IMG/VR virus record: IMGVR_UViG_3300027899_000001
Location: 310,001 to 374,000 of that record
DNA: 64,000 nucleotides
Strand: one strand, 5' to 3'
Within the stretch, counting starts at the first letter, position 1. The number at the start of each line of letters is the position of its first letter. Positions 960 to 19,471 of the stretch are shown in pieces. A model generated the notes under the pieces. It ran no database searches and was not told the origin of the DNA. It saw only the letters and a list, made by a program, of their open reading frames with translations. A program made the position numbers and the translations under genes.

Positions 960-1652
960 TTATAAATTTATCAACATACTAGCAACTCTTTTATTTCCCC
1001 TGTCATCAATACAGGCAATAAAATCGCCGCCAAAAAAATCTAATCGAGGAGTAACCTGAGGAGTATGTCCAAACACCTGATTTATTCCGTTATAAGGATC
1101 GTCAAGAACTTCCATGTAATCTGCCCAAAGTGGACCCGGAGTTCCTCTTCCGCCTCTCATTCTTCCAACTTTCCATATTAATTCTTGTCTATCATGAATT
1201 CTATTTAATGTGTCATGAATTAATTCGCCTTCTTTCATTTCAGGTTTAATAAAAAATTCATCATAATTTGTAGTGTATCCCGCGTGAGTAGCAAGAGTAT
1301 ATTTTTTAGTTGTATCATTAGTATATCCCCAAGCCATTTGAAACAAATCTGCATTATCATCAAAAATCTTTTTATATTCCCATGCAAATTCGTATTGTTT
1401 TCCGGTTATACCATCTATGCCGTGCATATATGCATAATCATGATTTCCGATAAGAAGCGTAACTTGATCTTTATTTTTACGAGCAAAGTTACAAATATTA
1501 TTAAGATTATATAACTGTATACTACGTTTAACAAAGAAACTATCTACATAATCGCCAAGAAACACGATTTTATAGAAATTTTTCATTCCTTCTTTAGCGA
1601 GTTCTTCCCACTCTATTAATCCATGTATATCCCCTATAAATAGTACTTTCAT
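960..1652 (-). CDS. Calcineurin-like metallophosphoesterase
   Basis: GDIHG, GDYVD, GNHD, THAG, GHTP motifs. Confidence 0.9.
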   Translation of the reverse strand: MKVLFIGDIHGLIEWEELAKEGMKNFYKIVFLGDYVDSFFVKRSIQLYNLNNICNFARKNKDQVTLLIGNHDYAYMHGIDGITGKQYEFAWEYKKIFDDNADLFQMAWGYTNDTTKKYTLATHAGYTTNYDEFFIKPEMKEGELIHDTLNRIHDRQELIWKVGRMRGGRGTPGPLWADYMEVLDDPYNGINQVFGHTPQVTPRLDFFGGDFIACIDDRGNKRVASMLINL

Positions 1653-8053: not shown

Positions 8054-10585
8054 TTACCTTAAAAATGTAACATCGCCAACTTTTTCGAAGTAATCACCAT
8101 TTATGTATCTTCCTGAGGCTCTCCATACATAAACTCCTTGAGGCGCAAGATTTCCATCTTCAAAATATCCATCCCAGCCTTTCATTAAATCTCTACTTTC
8201 ATAGATAAGAACTCCCCATCTATTAAATATTTGAAGATAATATTCTATGACATTTTCAAAATGAGGTCTAAAAACATAATCCATTTCTGAATATACTCCT
8301 TCTTGCCATTGTCCACCAGTTGGTCCTGAACCATTCCATTTAAAAGCATTTGGAAATTTTATAGTTCCTCCTGACCATTTAACAGTTATGGGTAAATTAC
8401 TTAATACATTATCACTGCATCCGTAATCATTTTTTGCATATAATGTAACCCAGTAAGAACCTTCATTCTCATATTTATGCCAAGGATTTATATCATAACT
8501 TAATTCGGTTCCATCTCCAAAATCCCATGCATAATAATCTGCGTACTGAGAATAATTATAAAATGTAACTATTTGAGTATTACTATAAATATCTTTAGGA
8601 TAATAATCAAATGATGCAATAGGACTTTGAAATACAGTAACCATTCCTTGGTGAAAAGAAGATCCTGCAATATTATATACAGTTAATCTTACAATATAAG
8701 AACCTGGAAGATTATAAGTATGTACAGGATTAAATTCATTAGAATAAGATCTATCTCCAAAATCCCATAAATATGATTCTCCATATACACTTAAATTTCT
8801 AAATGTAACTACCATTGGATTACATCCTACAGTATCTGGAGCAAAATAAGCTAAAGGAACAGGAGGCAATACAACTTGAATATGAATAGTATCAAATGTC
8901 GTGCATCCCCATTGATCAGGAGGAATAGTATATGTAACTACATGTTCTCCTATATCTGCAATTTTTGGATCAAAGGTGGAGCCCACAACTCCTATTCCAC
9001 TCCAAATTCCGCCTTCAGGTGTTGCATGTAATACTACAGATGGTCTATTAAGAAAAATAGTTCCGACTTGTTGTATTTCTATATTAGGAATAGGCATTAC
9101 AGTTACAATAGTGCTATCTACATCTTGGCAATCTGTATTTACAATATTATAGACTATTAAATGATCTCCAGGACCTGTAATTTCTGGATGAAATACATTT
9201 CCAATCATTCCTAATCCTGTCCAAATTCCACCTAAATCATGTGTATTTACTGTAATAGGCGTACTATTCACACATAAAGTATCTACAGGAGTTATCGTTG
9301 CATTCGGAGTTGCTACAGTTATAGTTGTTGTATCACTATTACTACATCCACTTACATTTATACTATAAATAATTCTATGATTTCCCGATCCCGCCAAAAT
9401 AGGATCAAATACATTTCCTACAACTCCTGCTCCTATCCATGTGCCTCCTGGATCATGTGCTACTAAAGTAACAGGCGCATCAGAAGAACATACTATACTT
9501 GGTGCAGATATCGTTGGATCAGGAATTGGCGATACTCTTATATATGTTGTATCACTATCACTGCATCCTTCTCCACTTGTTATTGTATGTATAATTCTAT
9601 GATTTCCTGGGCCTGCAACTGTAGGATTAAAAATATTTCCCGAAACTCCGGGTCCTGACCATTCTCCATTTGGAGACACACTTGTTAAAGTTACAGGATT
9701 TGCATTTGAACACATCGAATCAACAGGATTGATTGCTGCATCGGGATAAGGAACTATTAATATAATAGCAGTTGTAACCACTGGAGGAAAATCTCCATTT
9801 ACTTTATCTCTTGGTTGTCCGGGAATACTTGGGTCATCATAAGGATTACAATAATTCCAGTTTCGTAATGTTACTTGAAAATATTGTCCAACTAATTTAT
9901 CATTAGCTACATTCATTACATCTGAATAAACACCCGATCCTGTAACAGGACCAGGAAGAGTAATTATGCGAGCTGTATCTGGATACATTGTAGAATGTCC
10001 ATCTATTGTAACAGGAATTCCTGTCATAGTTATATCAGTTCCATAAATCCATTGTATCCATCTTGTATTAATATTTGGATTATCTCTTTCTTGAGGTGGA
10101 ACACAATTAAATAAAGTTAAATCTTGAAATCTAACATCTGCTCCATTTCCAAAGCATATTGGATAAACAGTAGGATCAATATGCATACGTCCACCATTAT
10201 GATTATCATCATCCCATACAGTTACTATTTGTTCTTGTGCTGAAGAAGTGCAAAGAACACCATTAACTCTAAGCATCGCTTGAGGATGATAATTACAAAC
10301 ATCTCCAGCTGACGTATAGGTATTAGTTGCCGTTGCTTGAAAAATACCAGGACCTACCATAACTGCTGGAACATCTACAACAGTACCATTATTCCAATCA
10401 AATTGAATACTTACAGGCGTACCAGCATCATTAACTCCAGTATAACTTACATTCCAAACTGCTATAACAGGAGAACATAATTTATCTGGAGTAATATTAT
10501 TAGCTTTAGAAAATATTGTACAAGTTTGCCCAAAAATATTAAGCGAAAGAAATGATAAAATTAAATATAGAAACCATTTTTTCAT
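8054..10585 (-). CDS. PKD-domain protein with T9SS type-B (gliding-motility) C-terminal sorting domain
   Basis: Signal peptide, SGxGV repeats, YLWDFGD PKD motifs, C-terminal IFNRWGVLIYES...GWDG...GVYVW. Confidence 0.85.
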   Translation of the reverse strand: MKKWFLYLILSFLSLNIFGQTCTIFSKANNITPDKLCSPVIAVWNVSYTGVNDAGTPVSIQFDWNNGTVVDVPAVMVGPGIFQATATNTYTSAGDVCNYHPQAMLRVNGVLCTSSAQEQIVTVWDDDNHNGGRMHIDPTVYPICFGNGADVRFQDLTLFNCVPPQERDNPNINTRWIQWIYGTDITMTGIPVTIDGHSTMYPDTARIITLPGPVTGSGVYSDVMNVANDKLVGQYFQVTLRNWNYCNPYDDPSIPGQPRDKVNGDFPPVVTTAIILIVPYPDAAINPVDSMCSNANPVTLTSVSPNGEWSGPGVSGNIFNPTVAGPGNHRIIHTITSGEGCSDSDTTYIRVSPIPDPTISAPSIVCSSDAPVTLVAHDPGGTWIGAGVVGNVFDPILAGSGNHRIIYSINVSGCSNSDTTTITVATPNATITPVDTLCVNSTPITVNTHDLGGIWTGLGMIGNVFHPEITGPGDHLIVYNIVNTDCQDVDSTIVTVMPIPNIEIQQVGTIFLNRPSVVLHATPEGGIWSGIGVVGSTFDPKIADIGEHVVTYTIPPDQWGCTTFDTIHIQVVLPPVPLAYFAPDTVGCNPMVVTFRNLSVYGESYLWDFGDRSYSNEFNPVHTYNLPGSYIVRLTVYNIAGSSFHQGMVTVFQSPIASFDYYPKDIYSNTQIVTFYNYSQYADYYAWDFGDGTELSYDINPWHKYENEGSYWVTLYAKNDYGCSDNVLSNLPITVKWSGGTIKFPNAFKWNGSGPTGGQWQEGVYSEMDYVFRPHFENVIEYYLQIFNRWGVLIYESRDLMKGWDGYFEDGNLAPQGVYVWRASGRYINGDYFEKVGDVTFLR

Positions 10586-11077: not shown

Positions 11078-11301
11078 TCTTTATAGTACAAATATAATTA
11101 AAATATATGAATAAATCATTAAAATGTTGTTAAAAAATTGTTAATGACTATTATATTATATTTATTCATCCTGTAATTCCAAAGGCTTTAAGAAAATATA
11201 AAACACCGGCAATAATTAGTATAATTACTATTATGCCAAATAATTTAAAGCATCCGCCTAAACAAGAACATCCACTTTCCATATAATATAGTTTTAATTT
11301 G

Positions 11302-11375
11302 AGGCCACAATCGGGATCGAACCGACTTCTCTGCGTTACGAAGGCAGAATCCTATGCCATCTAGACGATGCGGCC
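11302..11375 (-). tRNA. trnT-CGT: tRNA-Thr(CGT)
   Basis: Cloverleaf; loop TT-CGT-AA with C31-C39 mismatch; U73 as in the other Thr tRNAs here. Confidence 0.7.
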
Positions 11376-11384
11376 ATTTTTCGG

Positions 11385-11443
11385 ACGGGGCCCGCCTCCC
11401 ATTTAGGTGCCACGATTTTCGTGTCTTTAATAACCTGCCCCGT
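11385..11443 (-). ncRNA. Unidentified GC-rich structured spacer RNA
   Basis: ACGGGGC/GCCCCGT closing stem, AGGT/ACCT and CACG/CGTG inner helices. Confidence 0.35.
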
Positions 11444-11450
11444 ATCGGCG

Positions 11451-11533
11451 CGGAGAGCAGAGTACTCGAAACTCAGTCCTTGTAGACCCACTCGCTTTCC
11501 AGACGGTGGCAGACCCTATCTGCGTTACTCTCC
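11451..11533 (-). tRNA. trnS-GGA: tRNA-Ser(GGA)
   Basis: Long V-arm cloverleaf, loop CT-GGA-AA, G73. Confidence 0.8.
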
Positions 11534-11608
11534 ATAATCTCTCAGTGTATACATCGTTTCAGTAATACACTCATCAATATTGTTCCAATTGATGTTGAGA
11601 GAAGTTTG

Positions 11609-11693
11609 CGGAGAGAGCGGGTAACGATCCCGCTTGAGTATTGCCCCAGCCTCAGTTTAGCAAACTGGCCTATTACCTTCCTAGCCTCTCTCC
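11609..11693 (-). tRNA. trnS-GCT: tRNA-Ser(GCT)
   Basis: Loop TT-GCT-AA, long V-arm, atypical T-loop. Confidence 0.75.
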
Positions 11694-11697
11694 AATT

Positions 11698-11967
11698 TTA
11701 TCTTAGAAGATTCTTAATTATCATTGTTTTTGAATCTTCTAAAACTTTTTTAGTAAGTTTTATTACTTCATCAGCTTCTCCTTGTGATTCTTTAAGAAGT
11801 TGTTTATATTTTTCTACAGATTCATTTAAAAAAGTAATGTAATTATTTTTAACTTTATCAAGTTCATCCATAGCTTTTATTTTATCTCTAAGAGCTTCAA
11901 TCAATTCATCTTTTCTTTTGAATTCTGCCAAAAGGCTTTGTGTTAAATCATTGTTTGTCGAACTCAT
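11698..11967 (-). CDS. Hypothetical coiled-coil protein
   Basis: ORF track, fills gap between tRNAs. Confidence 0.6.
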   Translation of the reverse strand: MSSTNNDLTQSLLAEFKRKDELIEALRDKIKAMDELDKVKNNYITFLNESVEKYKQLLKESQGEADEVIKLTKKVLEDSKTMIIKNLLR

Positions 11968-11989
11968 TGTATCATATATTAAATGTTTG

Positions 11990-12079
11990 CGGAGTATAAA
12001 GGAATCGAACCCTCGGCGAACTACTGAACGCCGGCCTAGTTTTCGAGACTAGTTGTGCACCCATTGCACTCTACACTCC
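11990..12079 (-). tRNA. trnS-CGA: tRNA-Ser(CGA)
   Basis: CTAGT-CTCGAAA-ACTAG anticodon arm, long V-arm. Confidence 0.85.
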
Positions 12080-12339
12080 TAAATTTTCTTTAAAGGAAAA
12101 TGAATTAAAATTTTATCTTCATCCACTTCATTTAAAGATTTTTCATCTTTATCTTCCTCATCGATTACATATGCATTGCTATAAGCAAATTTTATGTATT
12201 CCATAGAGTTTTCATATGTTTTTCCTTTCTTCTCTAAAAAGTCAAACATATCGGATATCATTGCTTCACTACTTTTGTAACTTACAATTTCAAGAGTAAC
12301 TCTACCCACTAAATTTTTTTCATCTACAAATATTCTCAT
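12079..12339 (-). CDS. Hypothetical protein
   Basis: ORF track. Confidence 0.55.
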   Translation of the reverse strand: MRIFVDEKNLVGRVTLEIVSYKSSEAMISDMFDFLEKKGKTYENSMEYIKFAYSNAYVIDEEDKDEKSLNEVDEDKILIHFPLKKI

Positions 12340-12360
12340 ATTCTTATATTAAAAAAGTTT

Positions 12361-12450
12361 TGGCGGATGAGGTGGGGTTCGAACCCACGGACCACTTACG
12401 CGATCATTAGTTTTCAAGACTAACGCCATAGACCACTCGGCCACCCATCC
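12361..12450 (-). tRNA. trnS-TGA: tRNA-Ser(TGA)
   Basis: Canonical class II cloverleaf with encoded CCA. Confidence 0.95.
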
Positions 12451-12456
12451 AATTTG

Positions 12457-12528
12457 AGCCGAAAAAGGGTTTCGAACCCCCAACCTATAGTTTACAAAAC
12501 TATTGCTCTACCATTGAGCTACTTCGGC
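12457..12528 (-). tRNA. trnT-TGT: tRNA-Thr(TGT)
   Basis: ATAGT-TTTGTAA-ACTAT. Confidence 0.9.
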
Positions 12529-12535
12529 GTTTTTG

Positions 12536-12608
12536 AGCCCCCATGAGAATTCGAATCCCAGTCTTCGGTGTACAAAACCGACATAATTACCATCTATACG
12601 ATGGAGGC
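12536..12608 (-). tRNA. trnT-TGT: tRNA-Thr(TGT), second divergent copy
   Basis: TCGGT-TTTGTAC-ACCGA. Confidence 0.8.
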
Positions 12609-12616
12609 ATTTTTTG

Positions 12617-12688
12617 AGCCCTTACGCAGCTTCGAACTGCGAGTTCTACGATACCAACGTAGTGTTTTTCCTATTGAACTATAAGGGC
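12617..12688 (-). tRNA. trnT-GGT: tRNA-Thr(GGT)
   Basis: CTACG-TTGGTAT-CGTAG. Confidence 0.85.
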
Positions 12689-12699
12689 ATTAAAAATCG

Positions 12700-12776
12700 T
12701 TCCGAAGGAGGGGGTCGAACCCTCATGTAACCAATTACCCTTTCAACAGTGTATAAGACAGGGGGGATACTCCGGA
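12700..12776 (-). tRNA. D-armless tRNA-like RNA, anticodon TAT (Ile-AUA?)
   Basis: Acceptor TCCGGAG/CTTCGGA, perfect T-arm, loop CT-TAT-AC (imperfect stem) directly after acceptor, long extra segment. Confidence 0.55.
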
Positions 12777-12777
12777 G

Positions 12778-12894
12778 TGGAGCGTGTTCCTGGATTTGAA
12801 CCAAGACTTCCGCAATTACGAGTGCGGTGTTCTACAAAGGATTTTCTCGTGAGAAATGGTACCAATTTCCTTTCCTTCCTTAAACTACACACGC
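12778..12894 (-). tRNA. tRNA-Thr(CGT)-like gene with ~40-nt D-loop insertion and 8-nt anticodon loop
   Basis: Encoded CCA, T-arm CTTGG-TTCAAAT-CCAGG, stem CCGCA/TGCGG, D-stem GTTT/GAAC enclosing AAAGGA...TCCTTT hairpin. Confidence 0.55.
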
Positions 12895-12901
12895 ATTAAA
12901 A

Positions 12902-13102
12902 AATTAACTATGAGCATAGCCGCCATTCTGTTCTATTCCACCATTTGTCTATGCCTCAACCTTGTTATTATAGACCAGCTCACCGTCTAAACTATTTTGA
13001 GTTGCATCCTCGGCGGTTCAATCGATTATTAGTCTCCCTCCTTAAGCTGTGATGTGGCGAACTTCCTCACCTTTCGGCGCGATGGATCCTCGGTAGTTAA
13101 TT
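12902..13102 (-). ncRNA. rnpB: Minimal RNase P RNA (catalytic domain only)
   Basis: P1 ends pair; P2 TCCATC/GGTGGA; P3 GCC-GAAA-GGT; P4 GAGGAAG-T-TCGCCA with AACAGAA-TGGCGG-CT (bulged U); P5 CATC/GATG then CAA; P15 CTC/GAG with GGT; TAGACAAAT junction. Confidence 0.85.
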
Positions 13103-13361
13103 ATATTCAAAGAACACATTCTATTACAACATATAAAAGTCCGCAACATAAAACTGCTCCAATTGAAGCAAATACTAACGCTTCTTTCCATGATGCTTTA
13201 TTGATATATCTATAGGTAATTAAATTACCTGTAAACAATCCTAAAGTAAAAACTAGTATGTCTAATATGTCCATGACTTTAATTTTTTTATAATGTAAAT
13301 ATAAACATTATTTCTGAATTAAAAAAATATTTTGCCAATTATTTTCAAAGAACTTGTAAAT

Positions 13362-13387
13362 AAAAAAGGGAGCTAAAAAGCTCCCTT
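13362..13387 (-). terminator. Intrinsic terminator (attenuator of tRNA array 1)
   Basis: AAGGGAGC-TTTTTA-GCTCCCTT followed by T-run. Confidence 0.85.
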
Positions 13388-18487: not shown

Positions 18488-19471
18488 TTAAAATTCAGGA
18501 CATGGAAGAGCTCTCATTCGTTGTTTTCCATTTCTTTCAAAAAATCTATTAAATTCATAGATAAATGAAATTTCATGAGCTCCAACTGTTGCTCTATTGA
18601 GACTAGAAATTGTAAAATCGTAACTATAGCCAACAAATATATTTTTTGTTTTTAATCCTGCTAAACCTATAACTGCATCTCCTGGTTGATTTGATAATCC
18701 TGGAATGCCTCTATACCAAAGTCCTAAAATAAGTGGAGGTCTTGCATAATAAACTCCTACATCTGCTTGATAAAACTTTCCTTGGGTTTGTAAATTAACT
18801 GCTAAAGAAACAACATCTTGTCGTTCTATTTTAAGTCTTTGTTTCTTTATTATTTGTATTCCTCCATATAAGTTTACCTTTACTGGAACTCTTGATTCAT
18901 CTCCATAAAAAGAAATTTTAGGAGTTAACATATGATCTACTGTTACTCCACTCCATATTCTATCATTATACGCTATTATCGATGAAGCAAAGTCTATACT
19001 TGCTGAATTATCAAAAGTTGGTGGAATAACTGGAGGAGTATTGTTTATATTACTATTAAATATAAGTTTGTTAATATCTAATCCTAAATATTGAAATTTG
19101 AAATTAACACCAGGCCTTACATGCCATGTATTATTAATTTTAATATCATAAGAATATAAAGCTCCTATTGTTGTATTACTTAAATCTCCTGATCCTGCTA
19201 CATCGTATGATGCAATTATTCCTATTCCTGAATTATATTGAGGTAACGCTTTATCAAATGAAACACTATAAGTGTTATAGATATTTGATATTCCAGGCCA
19301 CTGATTTCTATAATTCATTGTTAATCTATAATCTTCTGTAGCACCTGCAAAAGATGGCGCTAACCATAACTTGTTGGCATAAAATTGTGAATACGTTGGA
19401 TCTTGTGCAAAAGTATTTGAATAGATTACAAATAACAGAATAAATGAACATATGTATTTTACAATACGCAT
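18488..19471 (-). CDS. PorP/SprF family T9SS outer-membrane protein
   Basis: QDPTYSQFY...APSFAG...YRNQWPG...YSYDFTIS...HEISFIY. Confidence 0.9.
   Translation of the reverse strand: MRIVKYICSFILLFVIYSNTFAQDPTYSQFYANKLWLAPSFAGATEDYRLTMNYRNQWPGISNIYNTYSVSFDKALPQYNSGIGIIASYDVAGSGDLSNTTIGALYSYDIKINNTWHVRPGVNFKFQYLGLDINKLIFNSNINNTPPVIPPTFDNSASIDFASSIIAYNDRIWSGVTVDHMLTPKISFYGDESRVPVKVNLYGGIQIIKKQRLKIERQDVVSLAVNLQTQGKFYQADVGVYYARPPLILGLWYRGIPGLSNQPGDAVIGLAGLKTKNIFVGYSYDFTISSLNRATVGAHEISFIYEFNRFFERNGKQRMRALPCPEF

Follow-up and report, generated by a model that had tools for sequence, protein, structure and literature searches.

Does a large phage encode, at the head of one of its tRNA gene arrays, an RNase P RNA, the ribozyme that trims tRNA 5' ends, and if so, of what kind is it and what might it do? 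To address this question we analysed a 64-kb window of DNA, referred to here as the window, which matches the 405-kb IMG/VR record UViG 3300027899_000001. The window is 29% GC and carries 39 tRNA genes called by ARAGORN, all on the minus strand, one of them a CUA-anticodon suppressor tRNA. A preliminary description of the sequence had proposed that the tRNA array is headed by a miniature RNase P RNA lacking the specificity domain (S-domain) and serving in 5' maturation of phage tRNAs, some of them D-armless. We confirm the structure and the position of this RNA, support its reading as a phage-borne RNase P RNA reduced to the catalytic domain (C-domain), and find that the rationale based on D-armless tRNAs is not borne out across the family.

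Structure of the miniature RNase P RNA

The RNA lies on the minus strand at 13102..12902 and measures 201 nt from the 5' end to the 3' end of P1. To test its identity directly, the window was searched with Rfam models. At gathering thresholds only tRNAs were reported; however, with permissive filters applied to 12650-13350, the archaeal RNase P model RF00373 aligned end to end (model positions 1-288) to 13091..12912, with a score of 44.7 bits and an E value of 2.2e-11, against a gathering score of 84. RF00373 was the model kept within the RNase P clan CL00002, where clan competition hides the scores of the other members. The deletion in the alignment falls exactly over the S-domain. These results show that, although the homology is far more than chance, standard annotation would miss the gene. 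Minimum-free-energy folding of the single sequence gave no signal on either strand (z -0.09 and -0.79), which is expected for an RNA with two pseudoknots.

All the elements named in the preliminary description can be read from the sequence. P1 is formed by a 5' strand at 13089..13102 (AAUUAACUA, a CC bulge and GAG) and a 3' strand at 12902..12914 (CUC, A and UAGUUAAUU); it is 7-18 bp long in every family member, with a different sequence in nearly every one, and all 11 modelled pairs covary. P2 pairs UCCAUC (13081..13086) with GGUGGA (12937..12942), with 98-99% of cells paired and 6 of 6 pairs covarying. The P3 hairpin, CGCC-GAAA-GGUG (13068..13079), has 4 bp here, while in most members it is a 3-bp stem capped by a GNAA tetraloop. 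CR-I and the 5' strand of P4 occupy 13055..13068 (GAGGAAGUUCGCCA), where GAGGAAGUUCGCC pairs with the GGCGGCU of CR-V, ACAGAAUGGCGGCUA, at 12917..12931, leaving one bulged U at 13061 or 13060; this is the P4 pseudoknot that RNase P RNAs form between CR-I (GAGGAAAGUCC-like) and CR-V (ACAGAAnnnnGGCUUA-like). P5 pairs CAUC (13051..13054) with GAUG (13005..13008), with 100% pairing and 4 of 4 pairs covarying in 58 sequences. The P6 pseudoknot, only a possibility in the preliminary description, pairs CAGCU (13045..13049) with AGCUG (12976..12980) in the P17 loop.

J5/15 is CAA (13002..13004), and the P15-P16-P17 arm spans 12955..13001, where P15 is CUC/GAG, P16 is GUU/AAC, P17 is UAGAC/GUCUA and the 3' side of the internal loop holds GGU at 12959-12961; P15 and P16 are 96-99% paired and all their pairs covary. 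P15 is separated from P2 only by GGCAU-AGACAAAU-GG, in which AGACAAAU (12943..12950) is CR-IV, and there is no P18. The two strands of P5 are 42 nt apart, and the S-domain is not wholly gone: at 13012..13041 there remains a P7-like stem, GGAGG/CCGCC with one A-G mismatch, followed by GA, a weak capped stub (13034-13024) and the linker GAUUGAA. The family consensus for this remnant is stem, GGGAG, hairpin and CGUUAAnCUACC.

A family of related RNAs

To determine whether this RNA is an isolated case, we searched for relatives. A pattern joining the two P4 strands at mini-RNA spacing found 35 IMG/VR contigs, one of which (405,016 bp) is the source of the window; all are visibly homologous although locus GC runs from 29 to 66%. 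A second pattern that does not use the 5' strand of P4 found 73 loci, of which 48 were new, and a covariance model built from the first set scored 47 of those 48 at 73-165 bits. With the family model R1, which gives 156 bits for the RNA of the window, at least 69 metagenome loci score above 100 bits. Searches by blastn with three members against 50,697 GenBank phage records hit only the metagenomic huge-phage records LR756501, LR756502 and LR756503, and the model confirmed members in LR756501 (735 kb, 117 bits) and LR756502 (642 kb, 112 bits), both unannotated. Altogether, at least 150 phage and metagenome contigs carry relatives. In contrast, the first pattern, scanned over 596 Gb of bacterial and archaeal genomes, gave six hits, of which only two are true members, on MAG contigs of 2.3 kb and 13 kb; the larger holds a tRNA array and looks like a binned phage fragment. 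Two more of the six are RNase P RNAs of Micrarchaeota.

The full structure, including both pseudoknots, was then tested on a MAFFT alignment of 26 distinct members. In this alignment 88% of cells pair, a value reached in 0 of 500 shuffles, against 61% after shuffling and 32-41% when partners are slid by 1-3 columns, and 47 of 55 pairs show compensatory changes. On a model-fitted alignment of 58 members the nested helices pair in 90.7% of cells, against 57.6% when shuffled; this alignment leans toward the structure, so the MAFFT result is the cleaner one. P4 is paired in 463 of 464 cells, with four covarying pairs, and its pseudoknot with P2 is supported by covariation; P6 shows at least 5 contiguous complementary bases in 51 of 58 members, using more than 15 different sequences. 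CR-I, CR-IV, CR-V, J5/15 and the L15 GGU are conserved in 58 of 58 aligned homologues. GAGGAAGUUC is invariant across these 58, although they were collected with patterns requiring either this motif or the ACAGAA...GGC motif. ACAGAA, GGCUA and the AG....AU of CR-IV are invariant in the family alignment A1, GCAA is at least 90% conserved, and AAAcAG is invariant or nearly so. The GC content of carrier loci runs from 26% to 66% with the core unchanged, which argues for selection on function. Nevertheless, the copy in LR756501 has ACAGGA and an altered L15, so not every member may be active.

Members range from 195 to 347 nt, and all the extra length sits in the stub hairpin between GGGAG and CGUUAAnCUACC, where the S-domain would attach and where insertions are evidently tolerated. 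Some members carry a tRNA/tmRNA-like insert inside the RNA, while Rfam gave no family for the large inserts in six of the loci.

Linkage to tRNA genes and the phage carrier

In the window, an intrinsic-terminator-like hairpin followed by a U-run (13366..13387, minus strand), identified by a consensus scan only, closes the upstream gene, and the transcription unit holding the RNA probably starts after it. A 55-aa ORF ends at 13107, and the RNA is followed by two tRNA-like elements and then by the rest of array 1, seven ARAGORN-called tRNAs (Thr x3, Ser x3, Thr) interspersed with small ORFs at 11301..12688 on the minus strand. A sigma-70 promoter scan gave hits at chance frequency (8 against 7.8 expected); the one that overlaps P1 is not evidence, and the likely host belongs to the Bacteroidota, whose promoters differ. 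The element X1 (12778..12894, minus strand) starts 7 nt downstream of P1 and has an acceptor stem, a T arm, an encoded CCA, an 8-nt anticodon-like loop and a ~57-nt insert at the D-arm position, with a partial tRNA match of 13.6 bits. The element X2 (12700..12776, minus strand; 77 nt) has a 7-bp acceptor stem and a T arm but an aberrant body. Neither is called by ARAGORN.

To examine whether this linkage is general, tRNA genes were called in 61 loci with the RNA. All 733 are on the strand of the RNA; 54 loci have at least one co-oriented tRNA in the fetched flanks, and a tRNA lies within 10 nt downstream in 19 loci and within 10 nt upstream in 17. However, in 7 of the 61 loci no tRNA was called in the fetched flanks, and none was found within 3 kb in LR756501 or LR756502. 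The RNA is almost certainly part of polycistronic tRNA precursors, and its ends would be made by the same events that free the tRNAs. Across the family the neighbouring genes are 866 ordinary tRNAs called by ARAGORN, so that service to D-armless tRNAs, the reason offered in the preliminary description, does not explain the loss of the S-domain, even though two aberrant elements do sit next to the RNA here. The -1 base of these pre-tRNAs is U in 626 of 866 cases across the whole GC range, generally the base that bacterial RNase P prefers. With respect to CCA the phages split into two groups: some encode it in nearly all tRNAs, while others, including the window (5 of 39), mostly end N73-C-AAA. 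No link between the L15 sequence and encoded CCA was found, since GGU is kept in both groups and CGGGUU occurs in both.

Regarding the carrier, window ORFs include a type IX secretion PorP/SprF protein and a CHU_C-tailed PKD protein, which point to a Bacteroidota host, together with a TROVE (Ro60-like) protein, an RNA-repair HAD domain, IF-1, NAD-salvage enzymes, a dCMP deaminase and several homing endonucleases with PHROG matches. No Ribonuclease_P (RnpA) domain appeared among the families examined for 74 window ORFs, or in the 10 largest ORFs, and no neighbour protein family occurs in more than 20 of 167 loci, the commonest being HNH endonucleases, a phosphoesterase and similar. A dedicated phage protein partner is therefore unsupported, and the RnpA of the host is the default candidate.

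Relationship to known RNase P RNAs and probable function

To establish which kind of RNase P RNA this is, we compared it with E. coli rnpB (M1 RNA). The helices P1-P6 and P15-P17 and the two pseudoknots are shared, and the joining regions are near-identical. GCAA corresponds to E. coli 246-249, so that CAA in J5/15 matches C247-A248-A249, where A248 appears to contact the -1 base of the substrate; AAAcAG corresponds to AAAUAG (254-259) and cGGGU to C290-U294, including GGGU (291-294) with the CCA-binding G292, G293 and U294, loop sequences matching E. coli 254-259 and 291-295. The family AGAUgAAUG corresponds to AGAUGAAUG (328-336) and is identical in many members, E. coli having AGAUGAAU at 328-335 as CR-IV, and ACAGAA corresponds to 347-352. 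The family GAGGAAGUUC...GGCUA faces GAGGAAAGUCC...GGCUUA in E. coli, where U69 is bulged; P4 is thus one A-U pair shorter, and a U-G replaces C70-G357. The order P5, P6 strand, next stem is that of P5-P6-P7 in E. coli, and the linker after the stub (GUUAAACUACC in many members) resembles E. coli G230-UAAACUCCACC. On that basis we infer that the remnant is P7 plus one capped stub (P9- or P10-like). The RNA is therefore a bacterial type-A catalytic domain of about 200 nt against 377, without P18 and without P8, P9 and P11-P14, and with them CR-II and CR-III; about 165 nt lie between the P5 strands in E. coli. The family model does not detect E. coli rnpB.

Similarly reduced type T RNAs, to which the preliminary description had pointed, are also about 200 nt long, keep the catalytic domain and have lost most of the S-domain, with the S-side stem ending in a small loop (PMC3579882). 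However, type T is defined by a 3-bp P2, a shortened P15 and a 2-nt J5/15, scores at most about 10 bits with RF00373 and works with archaeal proteins in hyperthermophiles at 61-78% GC, while the phage RNA has a 6-bp P2, a 3-nt J5/15 and 44.7 bits with RF00373. It is not a relative of type T but an independent, convergent reduction of a bacterial type-A RNA. The Micrarchaeota RNAs found in our scan (about 180-200 nt) have the same short P4 variant (GAGGAAGUUC...GGCUA) but show the opposite reduction: they keep the S-domain core (ACAGAAACGA...UGAAACGG), whose motifs bear no resemblance to the remnant in the phage RNA, lack P15-P17 and L15, and score 75-92 bits with RF00373 and only 32-41 bits with the phage model. 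Engineered C-domain-only RNAs, such as Eco CP RPR, are laboratory truncations that still cleave substrates with reduced efficiency (PMC5839562), whereas the phage RNA is a natural, conserved and widespread form that keeps a P7 stub and lacks P18. Theta (minimal HDV-like) ribozymes, also embedded in phage tRNA arrays, including those of stop-codon-recoded phages, are proposed to free phage tRNA maturation from host enzymes (10.1101/2023.06.13.544163), and one likely example sits in a family locus; they are self-cleaving, act in cis and handle the 3' trailer, while the RNA described here is a homologue of the trans-acting RNase P for the 5' leader.

Taking into consideration that the RNA keeps the elements known in E. 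coli to form the RNase P active site and to contact the substrate (GAGGAA, the bulged U, ACAGAA, GCAA, GGU and AGnnnnAU), that these are maintained by compensatory evolution across very different phages, that it is physically tied to tRNA genes and that type T RNA, which also lacks most of the S-domain, is reported to remain catalytically active (PMC7191817), we consider it likely, with catalysis itself inferred from sequence and not from biochemistry, that this is an active RNase P RNA that matures the phage's own pre-tRNAs. In the proposed mechanism it is transcribed with the tRNA array, released from the polycistronic precursor by the same cuts that free the neighbouring tRNAs, and then cleaves the 5' leaders of the pre-tRNAs, most likely as a holoenzyme with the host's RnpA, although this partner is conjecture. 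Substrate binding would rest on contacts retained by the C-domain, namely the acceptor stem, the -1 base with J5/15 and the 3' end with the L15 GGU, and the loss of contact with the tRNA elbow could be offset by these contacts, by RnpA and by the high local concentration of co-transcribed substrates. In the window, where few tRNAs encode CCA, the GGU contact would need prior CCA addition or would use C74 alone. The benefit to the phage may be extra or host-independent tRNA-processing capacity, although the host already has RNase P and the need for a second one is unexplained.

Other explanations seem less probable. The RNA could be a non-catalytic mimic that soaks up host RnpA or pre-tRNA 3' ends, throttling host tRNA maturation or regulating phage tRNA supply; the missing S-domain and P18, the shortened P4 and the lack of a phage protein partner in the proteins examined would fit, as would the inactivity in vitro of the RNase P-like RNA of camelpox virus (PMC3001073). 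We regard this as unlikely, since a decoy would not need the bulged U, ACAGAA, J5/15 GCAA and L15 GGU held invariant or nearly so across carriers of 26-66% GC, nor P4 and P6 maintained by compensatory change, and the S-domain-less type T RNA remains active. It also seems unlikely that the RNA is an active ribozyme with a narrower or different target, acting only in cis on its own transcript or cleaving other phage RNAs or tRNA-like elements such as X1 and X2 or the nested tmRNA-like inserts. Its abutment on tRNAs by 0-10 nt in about a third of loci, the aberrant elements directly downstream, the nested inserts and the relaxed substrate choice that would follow from the loss of elbow recognition speak for such a role; the loci without a called tRNA, the overwhelmingly canonical neighbours and the absence of anything in the sequence tying it to a non-tRNA target speak against it. 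That it is not a phage gene at all, but a decaying fragment of a captured host rnpB, a chance resemblance or a gene on cellular contigs, is very unlikely: no structural hallmark gene was seen in the 64-kb window and the Rfam score is below gathering, but at least 150 contigs carry covarying copies, cellular genomes yielded only the two short MAG contigs, and the ORFs of the window hit phage PHROGs.

A further and tentative possibility is that many large phages carry a self-contained tRNA-maturation ribozyme, a natural minimal RNase P working without elbow recognition and perhaps without any protein, co-transcribed with its substrates so that phage tRNA supply, including the suppressor tRNAs of recoded phages, is independent of, or orthogonal to, host RNase P. 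In some members the same RNA also hosts a nested tRNA/tmRNA-like gene, the excision of which would leave a two-piece ribozyme held together by P1, P2, P4, P5 and P6.

In the papers we could search, which cover few subscription journals and include the 2020 huge-phage paper and two jumbo-phage reviews, no phage-encoded RNase P RNA is described, and RNase P RNA appears as a cellular and organellar gene. The only viral precedent found, the RNase P-like RNA of the orthopoxvirus camelpox (PMC3001073), comes from a eukaryotic virus, is unrelated to tRNA genes and showed only some secondary-structure resemblance, without pre-tRNA processing activity in vitro. A conserved, abundant phage family would expose an annotation gap, as Rfam gathering thresholds miss every member, including those in the largest published phage genomes, and would offer a compact ribozyme with many natural sequence variants for structural and engineering work. 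It would also give a second, independent natural experiment, after archaeal type T, on how little RNA suffices for RNase P function, this time on the backbone of the well-studied bacterial type A, and would add RNase P to the translation-related genes that huge phages carry.

tRNA-like elements and tRNA genes of the window

In the window, two tRNA-like elements on the minus strand, at 12778-12894 (X1) and 12700-12776 (X2), are called neither by ARAGORN nor by Rfam. X1 is 117 nt long and shows an acceptor stem, a T arm, an encoded CCA and an 8-nt anticodon-like loop (CUCGUAAU), with a structured insert of ~57 nt at the D-arm position. X2 is 77 nt long and has a 7-bp acceptor stem and a T arm; however, no recognisable D or anticodon arms were observed.

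When the 39 tRNAs of the window were considered together (for example those at 12456-12688), only 5 of 39 were found to encode CCA, while 26 of 39 end N73-C-AA(A). In addition, 27 of 39 have U at position -1, usually within an AAAU leader, and tandem tRNAs are separated by spacers such as CAAAAAAU. Related phages split cleanly into CCA-encoding and non-encoding groups. A suppressor tRNA with anticodon CUA, which ARAGORN labels Pyl, is located at 43926-43999 (minus strand), suggesting that TAG is read as a sense codon in this phage. Several related loci (L004, L018, L023 and L030) carry one or two such tRNAs.

Insertions, partial matches and divergent forms of the RNA

In three members of the RNA family, at locus L048 (340-685, minus strand), locus L085 (5481-5827, plus strand) and locus L060 (473-682, plus strand), the stub hairpin holds an insert of ~150 nt with a 7-bp acceptor stem, a T arm and an ACCA end. 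The insert also contains a short frame, AKQRFIIKLDPQG-stop, whose differences between loci are synonymous. ARAGORN calls it a tmRNA only at a relaxed threshold, and only in L048; it is a possible miniature tmRNA-like gene nested inside the RNase P RNA, whose excision would split the ribozyme in two. At three other loci, L050 (3977-4171), L051 (3442-3574) and L056 (13436-13577), the family model matches only the 3' half of the RNA, from CGUUAA onward, and the 5' half is not adjacent; either a much larger insertion sits in the stub or these genes are split.

The member found in the 735-kb record LR756501 (locus L090, 2966-3196) has ACAGGA instead of ACAGAA and lacks a clear GGU in L15. No tRNA lies within 3 kb. 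This member may be a diverged or inactive copy. Five metagenome contigs (L094, L099, L107, L131 and L146), one of them of 227 kb, match the P4 pattern but score only 46-52 bits with the family model, and may represent a further subtype of small RNase P RNA. In two Micrarchaeota MAGs, at L038 (3899-4077) and L039 (4580-4779), we observed RNase P RNAs of about 180-200 nt that keep CR-II and CR-III but lack P15-P17. One of these scores below the Rfam gathering threshold (75.2 against 84), and this may be an under-annotated small archaeal form in DPANN. Finally, at locus L089, an HDV-like ribozyme match (RF02682, 40 bits against a gathering score of 44) lies at 1366-1434 (plus strand), directly after a tRNA ending at 1365; it is probably a theta ribozyme in the same array as a mini RNase P RNA.

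Protein-coding genes of the window

The window encodes, on the minus strand, a type IX secretion PorP/SprF-family protein (18488-19471) and an 843-aa PKD-repeat protein with a CHU_C T9SS sorting signal (8054-10585). Both are unusual phage cargo and point to a Bacteroidota host. A 567-aa ORF with a TROVE (Ro60-like) domain is found at 36814-38517 (minus strand) and, among the 74 medium-sized ORFs, one carries an RNA-repair HAD_SAK_2 domain, another an IF-1 domain and two a RAP domain. Taken together, the TROVE, HAD_SAK_2, IF-1 and RAP domains suggest an RNA quality-control or repair module among the tRNA arrays.
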